DNA of 62,868 bases, counting the filler, from Choristocarpus tenellus KU-1152 (taxonomy: Eukaryota > Protista > Phaeophyceae), in the NCBI GenBank assembly GCA_964200185.2. It is 12 parts of 12 records of this genome, joined end to end, with 100 filler letters (N's around TTAATTAATTAA, not from the genome) between each part and the next. Parts side by side here need not be neighbours in the genome. Positions count along the whole stretch, not along the records: positions 45,066 to 48,430 come from CAXNAD020020511.1; 11 more parts are not named here. One strand, 5' to 3'. A program made the position numbers and the translations under genes. Positions within the stretch are counted from its first letter, which is position 1. Each line of letters opens with the position of its first letter. Shown here piece by piece: positions 1 to 48,530 of this stretch. The notes beneath the pieces were generated by a model. The model saw only the letters and a list, made by a program, of their open reading frames with translations, searched no databases and was not told the DNA's origin.

Positions 1-1499
1 CAAGCAAAGTTCCATGTTATGGGGCGGGGGGGGGGAGGGGGGAAGGAAAATGTTTGCAATATTATTATCTATCCTTTCATCATCAAATCATTGATACATC
101 AGACATGACAACACATTGGCCTCCCTCTGTTGAACCTTGAATGCAAGCTTGGAATTTCAATAAGTTCAAAAACACACAGAGGACCTTGAAGGCAGGCCTT
201 GACTCCCACCCTCAATCCTCCAATACCCCCACACTAAGTAGTTGAAGGCATTACAACAGGCATGGAGAAGGGGAAGTACTCAAGTACTCAGAAGTAGGCA
301 TTACAACGGCTCACTTAAACTGTACTCAGCTTGCATCCTGCACAGTAGCATAGAGCACAGCATGAGATTTTTCTCAGCACCCCAGAAACACAACGGAATT
401 CAAGTGGAGTGTACACGTCCCATGTTGTAATCAATTGGGGCTCAACGGCACCCATAAGTATTGCTTCACTTCACCCCGTATGAACCCATGGAAACTCTTG
501 AGAAATGAGGAAACGACCATATTACAAATGATACAAACCTACTGGCACATTTGAGCGCGCATGTGGAAAAGGCAGGTAACCCGGTCAAACAAACAGAAAA
601 GTTCTTGCCCCACATCATGATGTGCCAATGAGCAAAGTCTGCATTGGAATCAACAGTACCTAGGGGAAAGACCACGCTAGGGCAGGGAGGGGGGAGGGGG
701 GTGAATAAAGGTTCGTTTTACGGGCCAGCTTGAGGCTCCAACAAGGCAAAAGGCAAGTTGTGACGAAACTCACCACTTTTAAGCTTGGGCTCAGCTGTGA
801 GTACGACTCCTGTGGTTAGAGAAAAAAAAATCAAAGAGTACAAAATGGTGGGAGGACAAGAAGCGGGCACGTGGGGAGGAATTGAGGGAATGAGCATGGA
901 GTACAGAACAAGCTGGCTGAAAAGAGATAATATCTACTTACAACGGCAGGGTGAGTTGGGACTGGGGAGAGCCTGGGTCCTTGGCGAATACACAACAGTT
1001 TTGGAACAGTATCATACTCAGCAAGCGTGCATGTAGTTAGTACCTGGCACAACAGTAACAATTGCGAAAAAACGGATTTTTCGAAAAGATCACCACATCA
1101 GGTCAGGACCTGGTCGAGGTAGGTGTTGGGTCCATTAGCTGTTTCCTGGCACCCGGACTAGTCTAGTGTGTTCGGGATAGGGCCTATGCAGGCTCAATAT
1201 AGGCCGCATGTACATTACTTCAAAAATAATTGCACACATTCCTCCTGGTCAGCTCACCGGTTGAGCAGACCCTGCCCTTGTGGCCATGGAAGGCTTTGGT
1301 GTGCATCGCGAGGTAGGTCGTAAGGTCGTAGAGCGCAAACTTTTTGTTTGTCGCAGTTCATCATTGCATCCTGTGGTGAGAGAAGCCTACGCAAAAATTG
1401 AGGAGTGAGGGTGTCCACGGAGAGGCGCAAGAATGGGTTATCAGAGAGGACGATGTAATACGCCTAACTGACTTCCACAACCCAGTCTCATTGGCTATA

Positions 1500-3300
1500 T
1501 ATATAATATGGCAGATATCTCCCTCCTCACCTTTGGAGCAACAAAACCCAGAACGCAAGGAGTCAGTAGCGTGACTGCTAATGCCCAGCACACCAGGCTA
1601 AGCGCAGCCCTGTTCGCCATGGGTGGCGAATACTACCGAACCACCCCTACGGGTGTATCCCCTCGTGACAAGCAATGCAAAAAGATCGTTGTATCACAAA
1701 ATCCTGGAACGAGAGGGACGGGAGGTAAAAATCCCTGAGTCAATATCGTTCGCCAGAGGAAAGGCTACAAACTCTGGATGACACCTGAAGACTGCAGTTA
1801 CATTTGAAAGAAAGGTATCATGGCATTTGAACGCCAGTGCAAGGAGAGATAGAACTGATGCTTTTGCGCATCCATTAGAGAGAAAGTAGGACATGGCGTC
1901 ACACCACTGGGCGCTCACACCATGCGACTCACGCACCTCGATTAGCTGTCATGCACCAAAATAGTGTGTATACTATACACAGTAGTGACGTATTTTACGG
2001 TACTAAACAACGTGGGTCAATGCAATTAATATTACAAAGGTTGTGTAACGATAACCAACATGACAACGTGGTCTTGGATGGAAGATGTTTTAGGTGTGGT
2101 GAGGACATCATGAGTACGTCCCACCTTCAAAACCCAAATGCCTCCAGATGCAGCAGGAAACACACTTCAATAGTCTTCAATCAGAAAAGAAATCCTTTGT
2201 GAGCCTGCTTGATGTGTGGGTTGACTGCACCCTCCTCTGTGACTTTGCTCTGTTCAAGGATGCAACCGATCTCAGCCTTCACAAAACTGGTGCAACAATT
2301 CTTGTTGAAATTCATGAAAAAAAACATACAAACATGGACGGGAAACGCCAACCTCGCCTTCGTAACGGTCACCAGATTCTTTTTCAACACGTGAACACAC
2401 CCAATCACTCCACAATACGAAATACAACCAATGATTCTCGACTACTACTATGTGTAATAGTGGTGTGTGAATAGGAGTGAGAACTCATCTTGACTAGTGT
2501 TGATGACATTGCAGCACTGAACCACCCTCTATATCTTCTTGTTCCTTTTTGAATCGTTATTGTGACTGTGTGCGATTTTGTTATGATGGATATAGGTATG
2601 TAAACTTATGGGAAAGCTGATACACATTGGGAAAAGCAGGAGGCACAATGCATTCATCAATTCAACCAGAATGGGCTGTTCGTCACAGAAAGAAAAGTGG
2701 TGAGTGGTTGTCGTTGCAAAATCTCGATACTATACTATAACAACACAATACGAGGTGTTGCAGGTGTTCCGGACACTATGAACGATCTACCTCTGGATCT
2801 CACTCACTTAGTTGCAACTATCTACTGTCTGTCGTCAAACACCCCCAGTAGCACTAAACAGGGTATTTGGGGGGGGAGGATTGAGGTGTCACATGGAGGT
2901 GGATTGCTTCGTTTTGGGGGCGCAAAACAATCCCCCATCGAAGAATTCATTTGCCGATCCTAATGTAGGTAAGGTGGTCATCATCAGCCAACTACAACAA
3001 GACAATGTCCATTTAAAAGTACCGAGATCGCATGGATACCACAAACGCCCCCATCATATAGGCATGGGGAGTTATCTCCAACGAGTTTATTGTCCATCGT
3101 GATAGGCATTGTAGATAAATTTAGTGGCAATGCTGGCAGTATCACCGGGTTCTATACCACAATAACCAGTCCTTCTCGCTAGACCACGAAATACTACTGT
3201 TGTGAGAGGTCATTCTAATGTTGTTGGTGTTGGGAACTTTTCACATTGCCACCAGTGATCCAACGTTGGTCATATTATCGTGAAAAAGGTGAACCTGATT
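1500..3300 (+). mobile_element. Degenerate LTR-retrotransposon (probably Ty1/copia) gag-pol remnant
   Basis: Zn-knuckle-like text (GRCFRCGE..H, ~2080-2160) and broken pol-like frames with many stops and frameshifts. Confidence 0.35.
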
Positions 3301-44750: not shown

Positions 44751-45995
44751 CACATTCTCCTTCCTAAGCACAAGGCTCAAAGTATCTGTGGGGGGGGGAT
44801 TGCGGCTATCCATTCGGGGCCATTTTTTCCACGTCACAAATTTTGTGTGATTTGGTTGCATGCTTTGGATGGATATTGTAAGTTCACTCTTCCTGGTCAG
44901 GGCCCAAATGGACACCCTGGTGTAGAATCCCCCCCCCCCCCCCCAACCAAGACGTGATGAAAAAANNNNNNNNNNNNNNNNNNNNNNNNNNNNNNNNNNN
45001 NNNNNNNNNTTAATTAATTAANNNNNNNNNNNNNNNNNNNNNNNNNNNNNNNNNNNNNNNNNNNNCCCCTCACTAACCACCCCCCCCCCCAAGATACTTT
45101 GACCCATCACCTACGCAAAACTGTGGTGTTCATTGTGTCCACTTGTATATTTCGTTCTTCCCAATCACAATATTGCAAAAGACAGTGGGCAACATGTAGT
45201 CGCAATGCATTCTCAAAATAGAGAATACAACATTCGGTTTTCACTTGATATTGCTGACCTACCTCAGGTGTGATGATAGTAATAGTAAGAATAATAGTAA
45301 CAGAAAGATAGCAATAGTAAAGCATGTTTTCAAGGGGCCGGGCTGGACCTTAGAAAATGTCATGGGACTGGGCTGCCCCAGCTATCTGCCAGCCCAATAC
45401 AAAGCCCTGGCCTTCGCTGTGGGGATTTATTGCAAATTGTAGTTGTAATGGCAATACTTCTCCTTACTTTGGTCTGGGCACTCACATGGTTGGACCATTT
45501 CGTTTTTATATACCATTTGGATTAGTGAGGGAGGTGCTTTCACTCAAGGTGCATATTCCTCTAGAAAGTTGTACAATAATTTGGAATCTTCTTAAAATTC
45601 TAGGGGTTGGTGAGGTCAAGATTGTACCTCCCCATGAAGAGTGCCAGTGTGGATAGTGGGACCTAGATTGGTAGAGAGGCTGGGAGGTTTGCCACAGACA
45701 GATGCAGTGTATATGGATATCTGTATCACGATTTCCAAGATCGAAAGATGATCATTGTTTACAACTTGTTTTTGGTAGGATGCCTAGGTGTTTGAAAGTA
45801 TTACTCTTTTCATCACGGAAAAATGTAACGCCAGTAAGATAAGATGGGCATATTTATCAGCTGTCCTATTCATGGGATATTGACTATGCTGCAGATGCAT
45901 CAATTTGGCTTGCTCACCCTTCTACATTCCTTACTTCTCACACGCCCTTTCAATCCCCACCCCATCACAACATTTTGCACATAATTGCTCACCAG

Positions 45996-46688
45996 GCGGT
46001 AAGGATGATGTTTATATTGCCAAGTGCATGGCTTGGTGATGCAACGAAAGTCCCAAAGGGCTACTATGACCCGCAGACATGGCTCCTCACCCTCTTTCCA
46101 GAGCACAACACATGGGCTAGGATTGGTTTACCTGAGGCTTTGTATGTTCCAACTTGGACTTTACGGCAGGTTCAAGAAGTTATTGCACTTCCAGCGGTGG
46201 GGTGCTCGGTCCTCTTCACATTCCTAGCTCTCTTACTATTGATAGGGCATATTCCCATTATGTTTAGCTGGTACCTTAACCGCCCCCACAGAGCTTTTCC
46301 CTCTTTTTTAGAGTCTCAAGTTCTAAAATATGTTGGCTTGCCATATGCCAACCTCTTTGCTGGTCCCTTAGGCTTGGCACATTTATACATAATGGGCCGT
46401 CTTTTCTTTGACCACAAAAGAAATAATAATATCTTAGCCTATTTATGTGTGTGCAGCATCTGGGCGCTTGCTCTTTGGAGCCTTGTTGATCCGGTAAACC
46501 GTGAGGATGAATACTCTGCCAAGTATTTTATTTTCGTAGAGACGCGTTTGTGGTGCTGGATTGGGGCGACGTGTGGGTGGTACTTTATTCTTGGTTTTAC
46601 CAGAGCAATGAACAAAAATCCGTTCACACAACTCGTTGAAACTGGACCCCGCCGTGTCGACCCAAGCTTTGCATCTTTCAGCTTTTGA
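45996..46688 (+). CDS. Terminal exon of an unidentified multi-pass membrane protein
   Basis: 230-codon open frame after a pyrimidine tract and CAG acceptor; several hydrophobic segments; the present stop lies inside the HU insert. Confidence 0.75.
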   Translation, partial: AVRMMFILPSAWLGDATKVPKGYYDPQTWLLTLFPEHNTWARIGLPEALYVPTWTLRQVQEVIALPAVGCSVLFTFLALLLLIGHIPIMFSWYLNRPHRAFPSFLESQVLKYVGLPYANLFAGPLGLAHLYIMGRLFFDHKRNNNILAYLCVCSIWALALWSLVDPVNREDEYSAKYFIFVETRLWCWIGATCGWYFILGFTRAMNKNPFTQLVETGPRRVDPSFASFSF

Positions 46689-46894
46689 CCAACCTTAAAT
46701 CTTGGCTGCTTATAAGCTTTAATTTGAATTGTCTCACCAGTCCTTGGATTACGTCCAGGTCTAGCAGCAACTTCGCTAACGCTATAGCTACCAAAACCTA
46801 CTAATGATACATCATTACCTTTGCCAAGCGCTCTGATAACTGACCTTGTGAACATATCAACAACTCTTTCAGCTTCCGCTTTTGTACATTGTTT
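46670..46894 (-). pseudogene. hup: Bacterial HU histone-like DNA-binding protein gene fragment (75 codons, both ends truncated)
   Basis: KQCTKAEAERVVDMFTRSVIRALGKGNDVSLVGFGSYSVSEVAARPGRNPRTGETIQIKAYKQPRFKVGQKLKDA carries the GFG and GRNPRTGE signatures of the Bac_DNA_binding family; no native start or stop. Confidence 0.93.
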
Positions 46895-48530
46895 GAAATG
46901 TAGAGCATCCTTTCACCCATCTGCTGACTTCCAACGTACCTGTGACTTGAAGCGCGGGCGCACGCGTGTGTGTATATGTGTGATTTTCCGTCTCTCTTTG
47001 ATGGTCTATAAGATACCAAAAAGTTTTGAGTACTGTGGTTTTATCCTTCATGATTAGTATAATTTAGCGCTGTTGTGGTCTCCTGACAGAATATGCACCC
47101 ATAATTTGTTGTGATTATCAGGTTGCTCTCAATCATTTTCAATACACAGAGAGAGACTGAAAAGAGCTCCATATACTGTTTAATATCTGTCCGAAAAGGT
47201 TGAAGAGTCAATGTATAGATGTGCGTTTGGAGACGATTTTGGTCCCATACAACGTAGGGCAAGAGCATCACTGTTGTCCTCCTTTAACTAGTCAATACTG
47301 GCATGGTACGTTATTGCTGTCTTCTAATCAATATTCTCCTATTTGTACTCTCTCCCCTTGATCAATGACGGTTTGACATGCTGTCCCTGTTACTATTTTT
47401 TGTCTTGCCAAGCAAATTGGATGTTCTTTTGTGTCGAAAATTGAACTCATCCTCAACCAGGTTGGCCCGATGGGTTGATAGGTAGCGAAATGTGTATGTT
47501 GTGCACATGCAGGTTATCTGTGAGCACTAATTGCTGCTTGTGGTGAAGAGTGTAAACAAGTCCTCAATTGCAGACAGAGCAAGATTTCCCCAAGATGACA
47601 GAAAAACTCCAGTCAGACACCTCAAATATTCCACGATGGTTGAACTACAGTAGTATTTACAGGTAGAAGGTCTATTCGAAGTACAGGATTATGTCATCAA
47701 TATGGGTGTCACTGATGTTAGGATAGGAGATTGCTGGGAGAGCGAAGGAAGCATAGTCACATATTTGTTGGGATTAAAACCAAGAGTTGTTGAATAACAT
47801 CGTGCAGGAAAGGCTCATCGCCAGAACCTGCTGGGTGTGTTACACGGTGAACATACACTGGTGGTCATTAATTATCGGCTGGGGCTTTGTCTCAGTCATC
47901 CATTGTCTCTAACTTATGGTCAAAGACCAACCCATCAATCATACCGCTATTTACGTTACTACTCTGTATTGTGCCAAACCAAATATTAACGTACATGAAA
48001 CTGTGTTACATGCTTCATCAGCACACACAACATCAGTAAAGCACTAGTTACTCGACAAGTGTGTCTTCGAACTGAATTGTATGCCCATGTACTAACCTGA
48101 TCTTCTTGACACCCATGGTCAGAGTACAGAGGAAAGCGATAAATGAATACAAAGAAGTACACAAGCGTATGCATCCTGGAAACGAAAGGAAGAGATTTGA
48201 ATATATCGAGAAAGAGTTCAGTAGGTGTCCCAATATGTTCCAGTTTGTACCGACACAAAATACCAAATTCCATTGCCAGCCCTCCATCCAGTCAGGAAAA
48301 AAATGGCCGAAACACCCGAAGTATCTGGGAGGGGGGTGAGGTCTAAACCAAGGTGTCCATTTGGACCAAAATATGCAAAAGTGAATATATATTATCTATC
48401 CGAAATATATATGCAACCAAATTACAAAAANNNNNNNNNNNNNNNNNNNNNNNNNNNNNNNNNNNNNNNNNNNNTTAATTAATTAANNNNNNNNNNNNNN
48501 NNNNNNNNNNNNNNNNNNNNNNNNNNNNNN

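Follow-up and report, generated by a model that had tools for sequence, protein, structure and literature searches.

Nuclear genomes contain pieces of organelle DNA, known as NUMTs and NUPTs, which are presumed to have been captured by end joining at a break. In arthropods and nematodes, most Wolbachia insertions (nuwts) are short, degraded pieces without function, and they have been regarded as 'fossils' of an infection, past or present (PMC3849323, PMC4046930, PMC4299567). For Megaira-group Rickettsiaceae, our literature search found only the case of Volvox carteri, in which the nuclear genome of a symbiont-free strain contains ~9 kb of rickettsial gene-like DNA that includes four gene-like regions (Kawafune et al. 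2015, PMC4324946). Integrated symbiont fragments record the history of a symbiosis and can date or reveal earlier infections. They are also evidence that DNA from bacteria arrives in the host's nucleus or germline, where it is raw material for functional gene transfer.

Here we describe a further instance of this known phenomenon, nuwt-like endosymbiont DNA in a host genome, from the assembly of Choristocarpus tenellus KU-1152 (GCA_964200185.2). The window that was analysed is a stretch of 62,868 nucleotides made of joined parts of this assembly, one of which is the whole of the 3365-bp contig CAXNAD020020511.1 (window positions 45066-48430). This contig contains 219 bp of a bacterial HU gene. 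We consider it probable that a piece of HU gene from a Megaira-like Rickettsiaceae bacterium was captured into a host chromosome, and that it lies there as a dead fragment that overlaps, in antisense, the 3' end of a host ORF. The features of the contig are as follows.

45066..45107, no strand assigned: very high-copy repeat at the left contig end (summed depth 2181-8592)
46005..46688, plus strand: orphan 226-aa ORF P0121, the sole gene called on the record, hydrophobic and membrane-like
46670..46888, minus strand: HU gene fragment, Rickettsiaceae (Megaira-like), from Pfam, blastn and the tree
46889..46915, minus strand: host sequence directly 5' of the insert (gene orientation), unrelated to the bacterial 5' part and holding a TGA at 46915-46913
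46890..47057, plus strand: open frame continuing the frame of P0121 for 55 codons past the insert, with no Pfam match
48314..48430, no strand assigned: right contig end occupied by a very high-copy repeat, with summed depths that reach 22961-92786

When the entire contig was compared with bacterial loci by blastn, the single match was an ungapped one at 46670-46888. It corresponds to codons 16-88 of a 90-codon bacterial HU gene (gene nt 46-264, 219 nt) and has no indels relative to the bacterial HU genes. The translated insert matched the Pfam family PF00216 (Bac_DNA_binding) over profile positions 15-88 of 90 with 85.1 bits and an E-value of 4.1e-24, which passes the HU/IHF family threshold (gathering score of 22.4 bits). 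NCBIfam models for HU-beta and IHF matched the same span with scores far under their equivalog cut-offs, as expected because the insert is a fragment, and solved HU and IHF structures also matched this span, with E-values down to 9e-18. A reading made from the sequence alone (the sequence-only reading) had proposed an HU fragment of 75 codons at 46670-46894, and these results confirm it as real with several corrections. The fragment is on the minus strand; homology covers 46670-46888, and the two codons at 46889-46894 have none; and 15 N-terminal residues are missing rather than about 12, while the 'few' missing at the C-terminus are two residues plus the stop codon. Its remarks on A/T-rich third positions (GC3 of 23%, vs 16-29% in the bacterial relatives) and on an in-frame stop just upstream, the TGA at 46915-46913, both proved accurate.

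Both ends of the homology are sharp. In gene orientation it begins with TGT of codon 16 (46888) and stops with GCA of codon 88 (46670). Translation of the minus strand from 46936 to 46640 passes through the upstream TGA and then gives an open frame with CTKAEAE, VGFGSY, GRNPRTGE and IKAYKQPRFKVGQKLKDA. Bacterial HU residues 1-15 (MNKGNFVSYIADKHN) are replaced in the contig by unrelated sequence with a stop, and this is also what stands upstream of the insert in place of codons 9-15 (YIADKHN). No microhomology longer than one base is visible at the insert junctions. An upstream extension of the insert beyond 46888, in which MAFFT paired ~15 host bases with bacterial codons 9-13 (10/15, after a 7-nt gap), was rejected because identity falls from 93% to 67%. 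At 46657-46669, next to the other end, a host AAGCTT matches after an 8-nt gap the AAGCTT found just past the HU stop codon in two bacterial loci (L002 and L004), which may be chance or may mean that the insert was at first slightly longer and later suffered a small deletion. JGI metagenome contigs did not contain a 34-mer that spans the left junction.

Judged from its sequence, the insert cannot be expected to give a working HU, because helix 1 is absent and the first ATG is residue 28. A complete HU domain has ~90 residues and includes helix 1 of the dimer core; the insert has neither start nor stop codon and lacks 15 codons at its 5' end and two at its 3' end, and its frame continues into the antisense of the host ORF. 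It is almost certainly a small, inert and non-functional dead fragment. The frame is also that of a 138-aa minus-strand ORF (46439-46855), whose ATG is HU residue 28 and which extends beyond the HU homology, antisense to the host ORF. We saw no sign that this ORF is a gene. Long antisense frames are frequent opposite coding sequence.

Could the insert instead be an exon of a functional eukaryotic HU-like gene, organelle-targeted or of the dinoflagellate type, with its N-terminus encoded on an upstream exon? Some eukaryotes have HU-like proteins of bacterial descent, and the minus-strand frame through the insert is open for 158 codons, both of which would suit such a gene. However, the insert has 93% DNA identity to bacterial HU genes with bacterial GC3 and no indels, its homology breaks off at codons 16 and 88 without a stop codon and gives way to unrelated sequence on either side, and its three non-synonymous changes are unique relative to its seven closest relatives. 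A product from the first ATG would be without helix 1 and part of helix 2. The insert is neither a complete ORF with an N-terminal extension nor a member of a eukaryotic or plastid HU group, and it sits deep within a Rickettsiaceae clade (see below). We therefore regard a eukaryotic HU exon as exceedingly improbable, and the sequence-only reading was right that this does not look like an organelle-targeted HU gene, because the start codon, the N-terminal 15 codons and the stop codon are all missing.

The relatives of the insert are bacterial. A word-based protein search gave 1159 matches, the best of which were 90-aa HU proteins with 91-95% identity, and the named ones among these best matches were 'Rickettsiaceae bacterium' MAGs. 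DNA identity was 93.2-93.6% to L002 (a seawater metagenome), L003 and L004, 91.3% to L005-7, and 88% to L001 (a 1.48-Mb chromosome); the nearest sampled bacterium is thus 93.6% identical to the insert. For the closest bacterial HU protein (P0001), identity is 82% to the HU of Ca. Megaera/Megaira venefica and 79% to that of Ca. M. polyxenophila. In a maximum-likelihood tree of 219 columns, the insert fell within a 12-row clade of Rickettsiaceae with support of 99/98, nested among endosymbionts, and within a 4-row subclade (97/93) whose other members are L002, L009 and the resident symbiont (see below); the end branch of the insert is 0.036. The tree rows NVVL01, RXKF01 and JAFLDA01 are 'Ca. Megaira' in the wide sense of Davison et al. 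2023 (PMC10132079). The origin of the insert from a Megaira-like Rickettsiaceae bacterium is strongly supported by these data. This agrees with the Rickettsiaceae source that had been proposed from motifs, and the phylogeny does not group the insert with HU-like proteins of plastids or eukaryotes.

In this Rickettsiaceae clade, the neighbourhood upstream of HU is conserved (read from L001-L005 and L055-L057) and comprises CorC/HlyC-type, SMC/AAA, lipoyl synthase and polyketide-cyclase-like genes. The downstream side varies by genome and includes an ankyrin-repeat gene, MepB-like, Ada-type and MOSC genes. None of the conserved upstream genes is present in the window.

The junctions of the insert were followed in three public runs (X1-X3), which come from three samples of one study and hold 75-96% of the contig's sampled words. 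The junction evidence consists of Logan contigs, not raw or long reads, and the support is not independent because all three runs belong to a single study that is probably the source of the assembly. The contigs that carry the insert-type sequence are listed here.

X1 record 3, 45995-46720: depth 153, insert-type, crosses the left junction
X1 record 4, 46691-48361: depth 17, insert-type, crosses the right junction
X2 record 9, 45086-46718: depth 17, insert-type, crosses the left junction
X2 record 11, 46691-46798: depth 24, insert-type, within the HU stretch
X2 record 12, 46770-48348: depth 22, insert-type, crosses the right junction
X3 record 20, 46248-46718: depth 9, insert-type, crosses the left junction

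Across the junctions these contigs have 0-1 letters that differ from the window. Both junctions are crossed in X1 and X2, and the left one is crossed in X3. In these Logan contigs of one study, the junctions with non-bacterial DNA have a depth of 7-24, vs 65-3200 for the bacterial allele. Among the listed joints of the run contigs, no empty-site allele was seen.

A second population of contigs has a bacterial-type HU gene, at depths of 65 (X1), ~3100-3200 (X2) and 1957 (X3). Past 46888 these contigs encode FVSYIADKHN, and past 46670 they encode C, N and a stop codon followed by a bacterial spacer; a complete resident HU gene is thus present in all three runs. The resident variant was rebuilt from its listed differences to the window. 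It differs from the insert at 15 listed sites within 46691-46888 (198 nt), or at 16 when counted on the longest contigs. The resident gene is 99.5% identical to the MAG contig JANQTT010000113 (L009, isolate MAG_16), which the spacer after the gene also matches, and is 92% identical to the insert. A symbiont of the donor type is therefore associated with the host in all three runs. The resident HU protein (P0015) was also found in several other public samples.

The symbiont's abundance makes it necessary to weigh an assembly or library chimera, in which symbiont reads were misjoined to host sequence and the junction exists in no genome. The symbiont's depth in these runs is as high as ~3200x, the contig, at 3365 bp, is short and comes from a fragmented assembly, and summed depth rises over 46648-46986. 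That rise, however, is the sum of two different molecules, because the separate bacterial-type contigs have other letters at the 15 listed sites (up to 16), and the integrated copy is at flank depth: the insert-type contig within the HU stretch in X2 (record 11) has a depth of 24, vs 17-22 for the flanks. The insert is ~8% different from the resident gene, and so was not built from its reads. Since the contigs span the junctions at the depth of the flanks, the chimeric contig that the sequence-only reading had named as a danger to its claim is very improbable. The observations support physical integration of the insert in a low-copy contig. That contig lies outside the bacterial genome, since the ratio of resident to contig depth varies between runs from ~3 (X1) through ~160 (X2) to ~260 (X3).

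To what extent the fragment has decayed can be read from its substitutions. Relative to the seven closest bacterial relatives, the insert has six private substitutions, three of them non-synonymous (S30R, G34R and E38K) and three synonymous, vs 7 non-synonymous and 40 synonymous changes in the bacterial clade (Fisher p 0.07). Of 37 Rickettsiaceae HU genes compared, none has S30R and three have the G34R state. These small numbers, which are not significant, suggest that constraint on the insert may have been relaxed or lost. On a neutral-decay scale the insert would be young, because its GC3 is still bacterial and it has neither indels nor stops. The claim of a 'recent' insertion stands in a relative sense only; the insert is 7-8% from every sampled bacterium, including the resident.

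The donor was either an ancestor or earlier stage of the resident lineage or a sister strain, because the resident symbiont is related but not identical to the insert. The tree places the insert outside L002 + (resident, L009). When the insert, the resident and L009 were forced into one clade, the arrangement was not rejected (AU p 0.36), and an origin of the insert from a lineage separate from that of the resident is not established by this tree.

The two ends of the contig bear on the nature of the carrier. Within the contig, depth is 6-23 and is low and stable in the three samples. At 45105-45109 many other contigs turn to unrelated sequence, with loose ends that show low agreement, and loose ends also occur before 48314 at the right-end repeat. 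In part, each contig end is an inverted copy of the other (I2, 83%), the left end having an inverted match to 48319-48342. Many contigs join ~45105 to ~48314 directly or via 26-40 other letters; there may be a short MITE-like element with both contig-end sequences as its ends, and the contig's unique part of 3.2 kb may lie either between two copies or within one element. The copy number and the partly inverted orientation of the contig ends fit the sequence-only remark that both carry MITE copies.

From the copy number of the end repeats, the low coding density and a depth that is uncoupled from that of the bacterium, we infer that the carrier is probably a eukaryotic nuclear genome. The integration might also be real without the host nucleus being its carrier, in which case the contig would come from something else in the sample, such as an extrachromosomal element, a large virus or another eukaryote. 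None of the flanks has a homologue that points to a taxon, and no recognisable eukaryotic homologue of the flanks was found by word search, Atlas, Pfam or Rfam, or by a scan of 1.84 billion representatives for P0121. Against such a carrier, each end runs into repeats whose depth is thousands of times that of the contig, the interior depth is low and stable in three samples whereas the bacterium varies ~90-fold relative to it, and coding density is low. A carrier other than the host nucleus thus appears decidedly unlikely, and integration into a nuclear chromosome is the reading that we follow below.

The insert lies at the end of the contig's only long ORF, a plus-strand frame open from 45975 to 46688, from whose ATG at 46005 P0121 is called. 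A frame of 237 open codons has a probability by chance of ~3e-5 per frame start. P0121 has hydrophobic stretches at residues ~55-92 and ~141-165. It has no relatives but itself in the word search and in a phmmer scan of 1.84 billion representatives, it matches no Pfam or NCBIfam family, and its Atlas score of 0.77 is under the useful level. It is probably a lineage-specific gene. The last six codons of P0121 and its TGA (46686-46688) fall in the antisense of the HU insert, and the insertion would thus have disrupted this host ORF. The insert's length of 219 is 73 x 3, and past the insert the frame of P0121 is open for a further 55 codons (46890-47057), a continuation with a chance probability of ~0.08. 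This segment is possibly the displaced original 3' end of the P0121 ORF, for which the open frame is only suggestive.

Elsewhere in the contig, ten other ORFs of >=60 aa gave no Pfam match above threshold; a match to TIC20 in one contig ORF (E 0.027, 14.7 bits vs a cut-off of 28.6) was sub-threshold and was dismissed as noise. The contig had no match in Rfam. At 47778-48116 depth rises to as much as 187 in X2, and a joint skips 78 bases (47859->47938) in X2 and X3; part of the contigs have single-base insertions at 48015/48016. The segment 47778-48116 may be either moderately repeated or subject to allelic indel variation.

In X1, the stretch 45995-46720 is represented by one contig at a depth of 153, vs 17-23 for its neighbours, and in X2 its depth is a uniform 17. 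X1 also has a loose end there, made of 28 unrelated letters, which starts just before 45995/45996 and directly follows an AG (45994-45995). Both observations would fit a sample-specific duplication or, if there is RNA in X1, an exon that is spliced and expressed; none of the runs X1-X3 is recorded as RNA.

These features raise the question of whether the insertion was co-opted, either as a new C-terminus, stop and 3' end for a host membrane-protein gene or as a source of antisense RNA. The host ORF reads six codons into the insert and then stops, the insert is a multiple of three with the old frame open for 55 codons beyond it, and the X1 depth and AG-adjacent loose end would fit an expressed exon if the run were RNA. 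However, no run is recorded as RNA and P0121 is without relatives, the open frame past the insert has a p of ~0.08 by chance, and a truncating insertion is equally likely to be neutral or harmful. We consider co-option unlikely, and an inert fragment remains our preferred reading.

The following course of events would account for the locus. A 219-bp piece of a symbiont's HU gene would have entered a host chromosome, most likely captured while a double-strand break was being repaired, the same route as for NUMTs, NUPTs and Wolbachia nuwts. Its landing site would be the 3' end of a host ORF, on the antisense strand, and the ORF would now end six codons inside the insert. A related but non-identical symbiont persists at very high titre in the host, or at least in its sample. 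A more far-reaching interpretation is that the insert stems, as a fossil, from a Megaira-like lineage other than that of the resident and is one of many such pieces in this genome, documenting symbiont turnover or long co-residence in a eukaryote lineage for which there is no prior description, and that the insertion may, in addition, have given a lineage-specific membrane-protein gene an altered 3' end. We put this forward as a tentative possibility that we do not favour.

The insert is of interest for what it tells of the past of a Megaira-like symbiosis in this host, and it gives a caution for contamination filtering. In genome curation, this contig should not be removed as bacterial contamination. 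Conversely, symbiont-like matches in this assembly are no proof of infection unless junctions and depth have been checked.

At the level of the protein family, residues 16-88 of the insert align fully with bacterial HU/IHF (PF00216; e.g., E. coli HU-beta, PDB 2o97_B), including the beta-arm motif GRNPRTGE. Unlike these proteins, the insert is without helix 1 and both gene ends, and hence is not a functional member of the family. As an integrated piece of DNA, it resembles NUMTs and NUPTs in its size class (tens to hundreds of bp) and in its blunt borders without target-site features. It differs from them in that the donor was a facultative bacterial symbiont, not an organelle. Like the nuwts, it is a fragment of an intracellular alphaproteobacterium in what is probably a host chromosome; unlike them, it comes from another bacterial family and lies in an apparently non-animal host, and one fragment is seen here. 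The closest parallel in donor is the Volvox carteri case, where the Megaira group is also the source and the transferred DNA is likewise not from the strain now found in hosts, a non-identity that in Volvox points to more than one infection or to an older one (PMC4324946). Whereas the Volvox DNA amounts to ~9 kb in a symbiont-free strain, the present insert is 219 bp of one gene in the presence of a related symbiont. It would add to the Megaira group a data point from a host that still has a related symbiont at very high titre.
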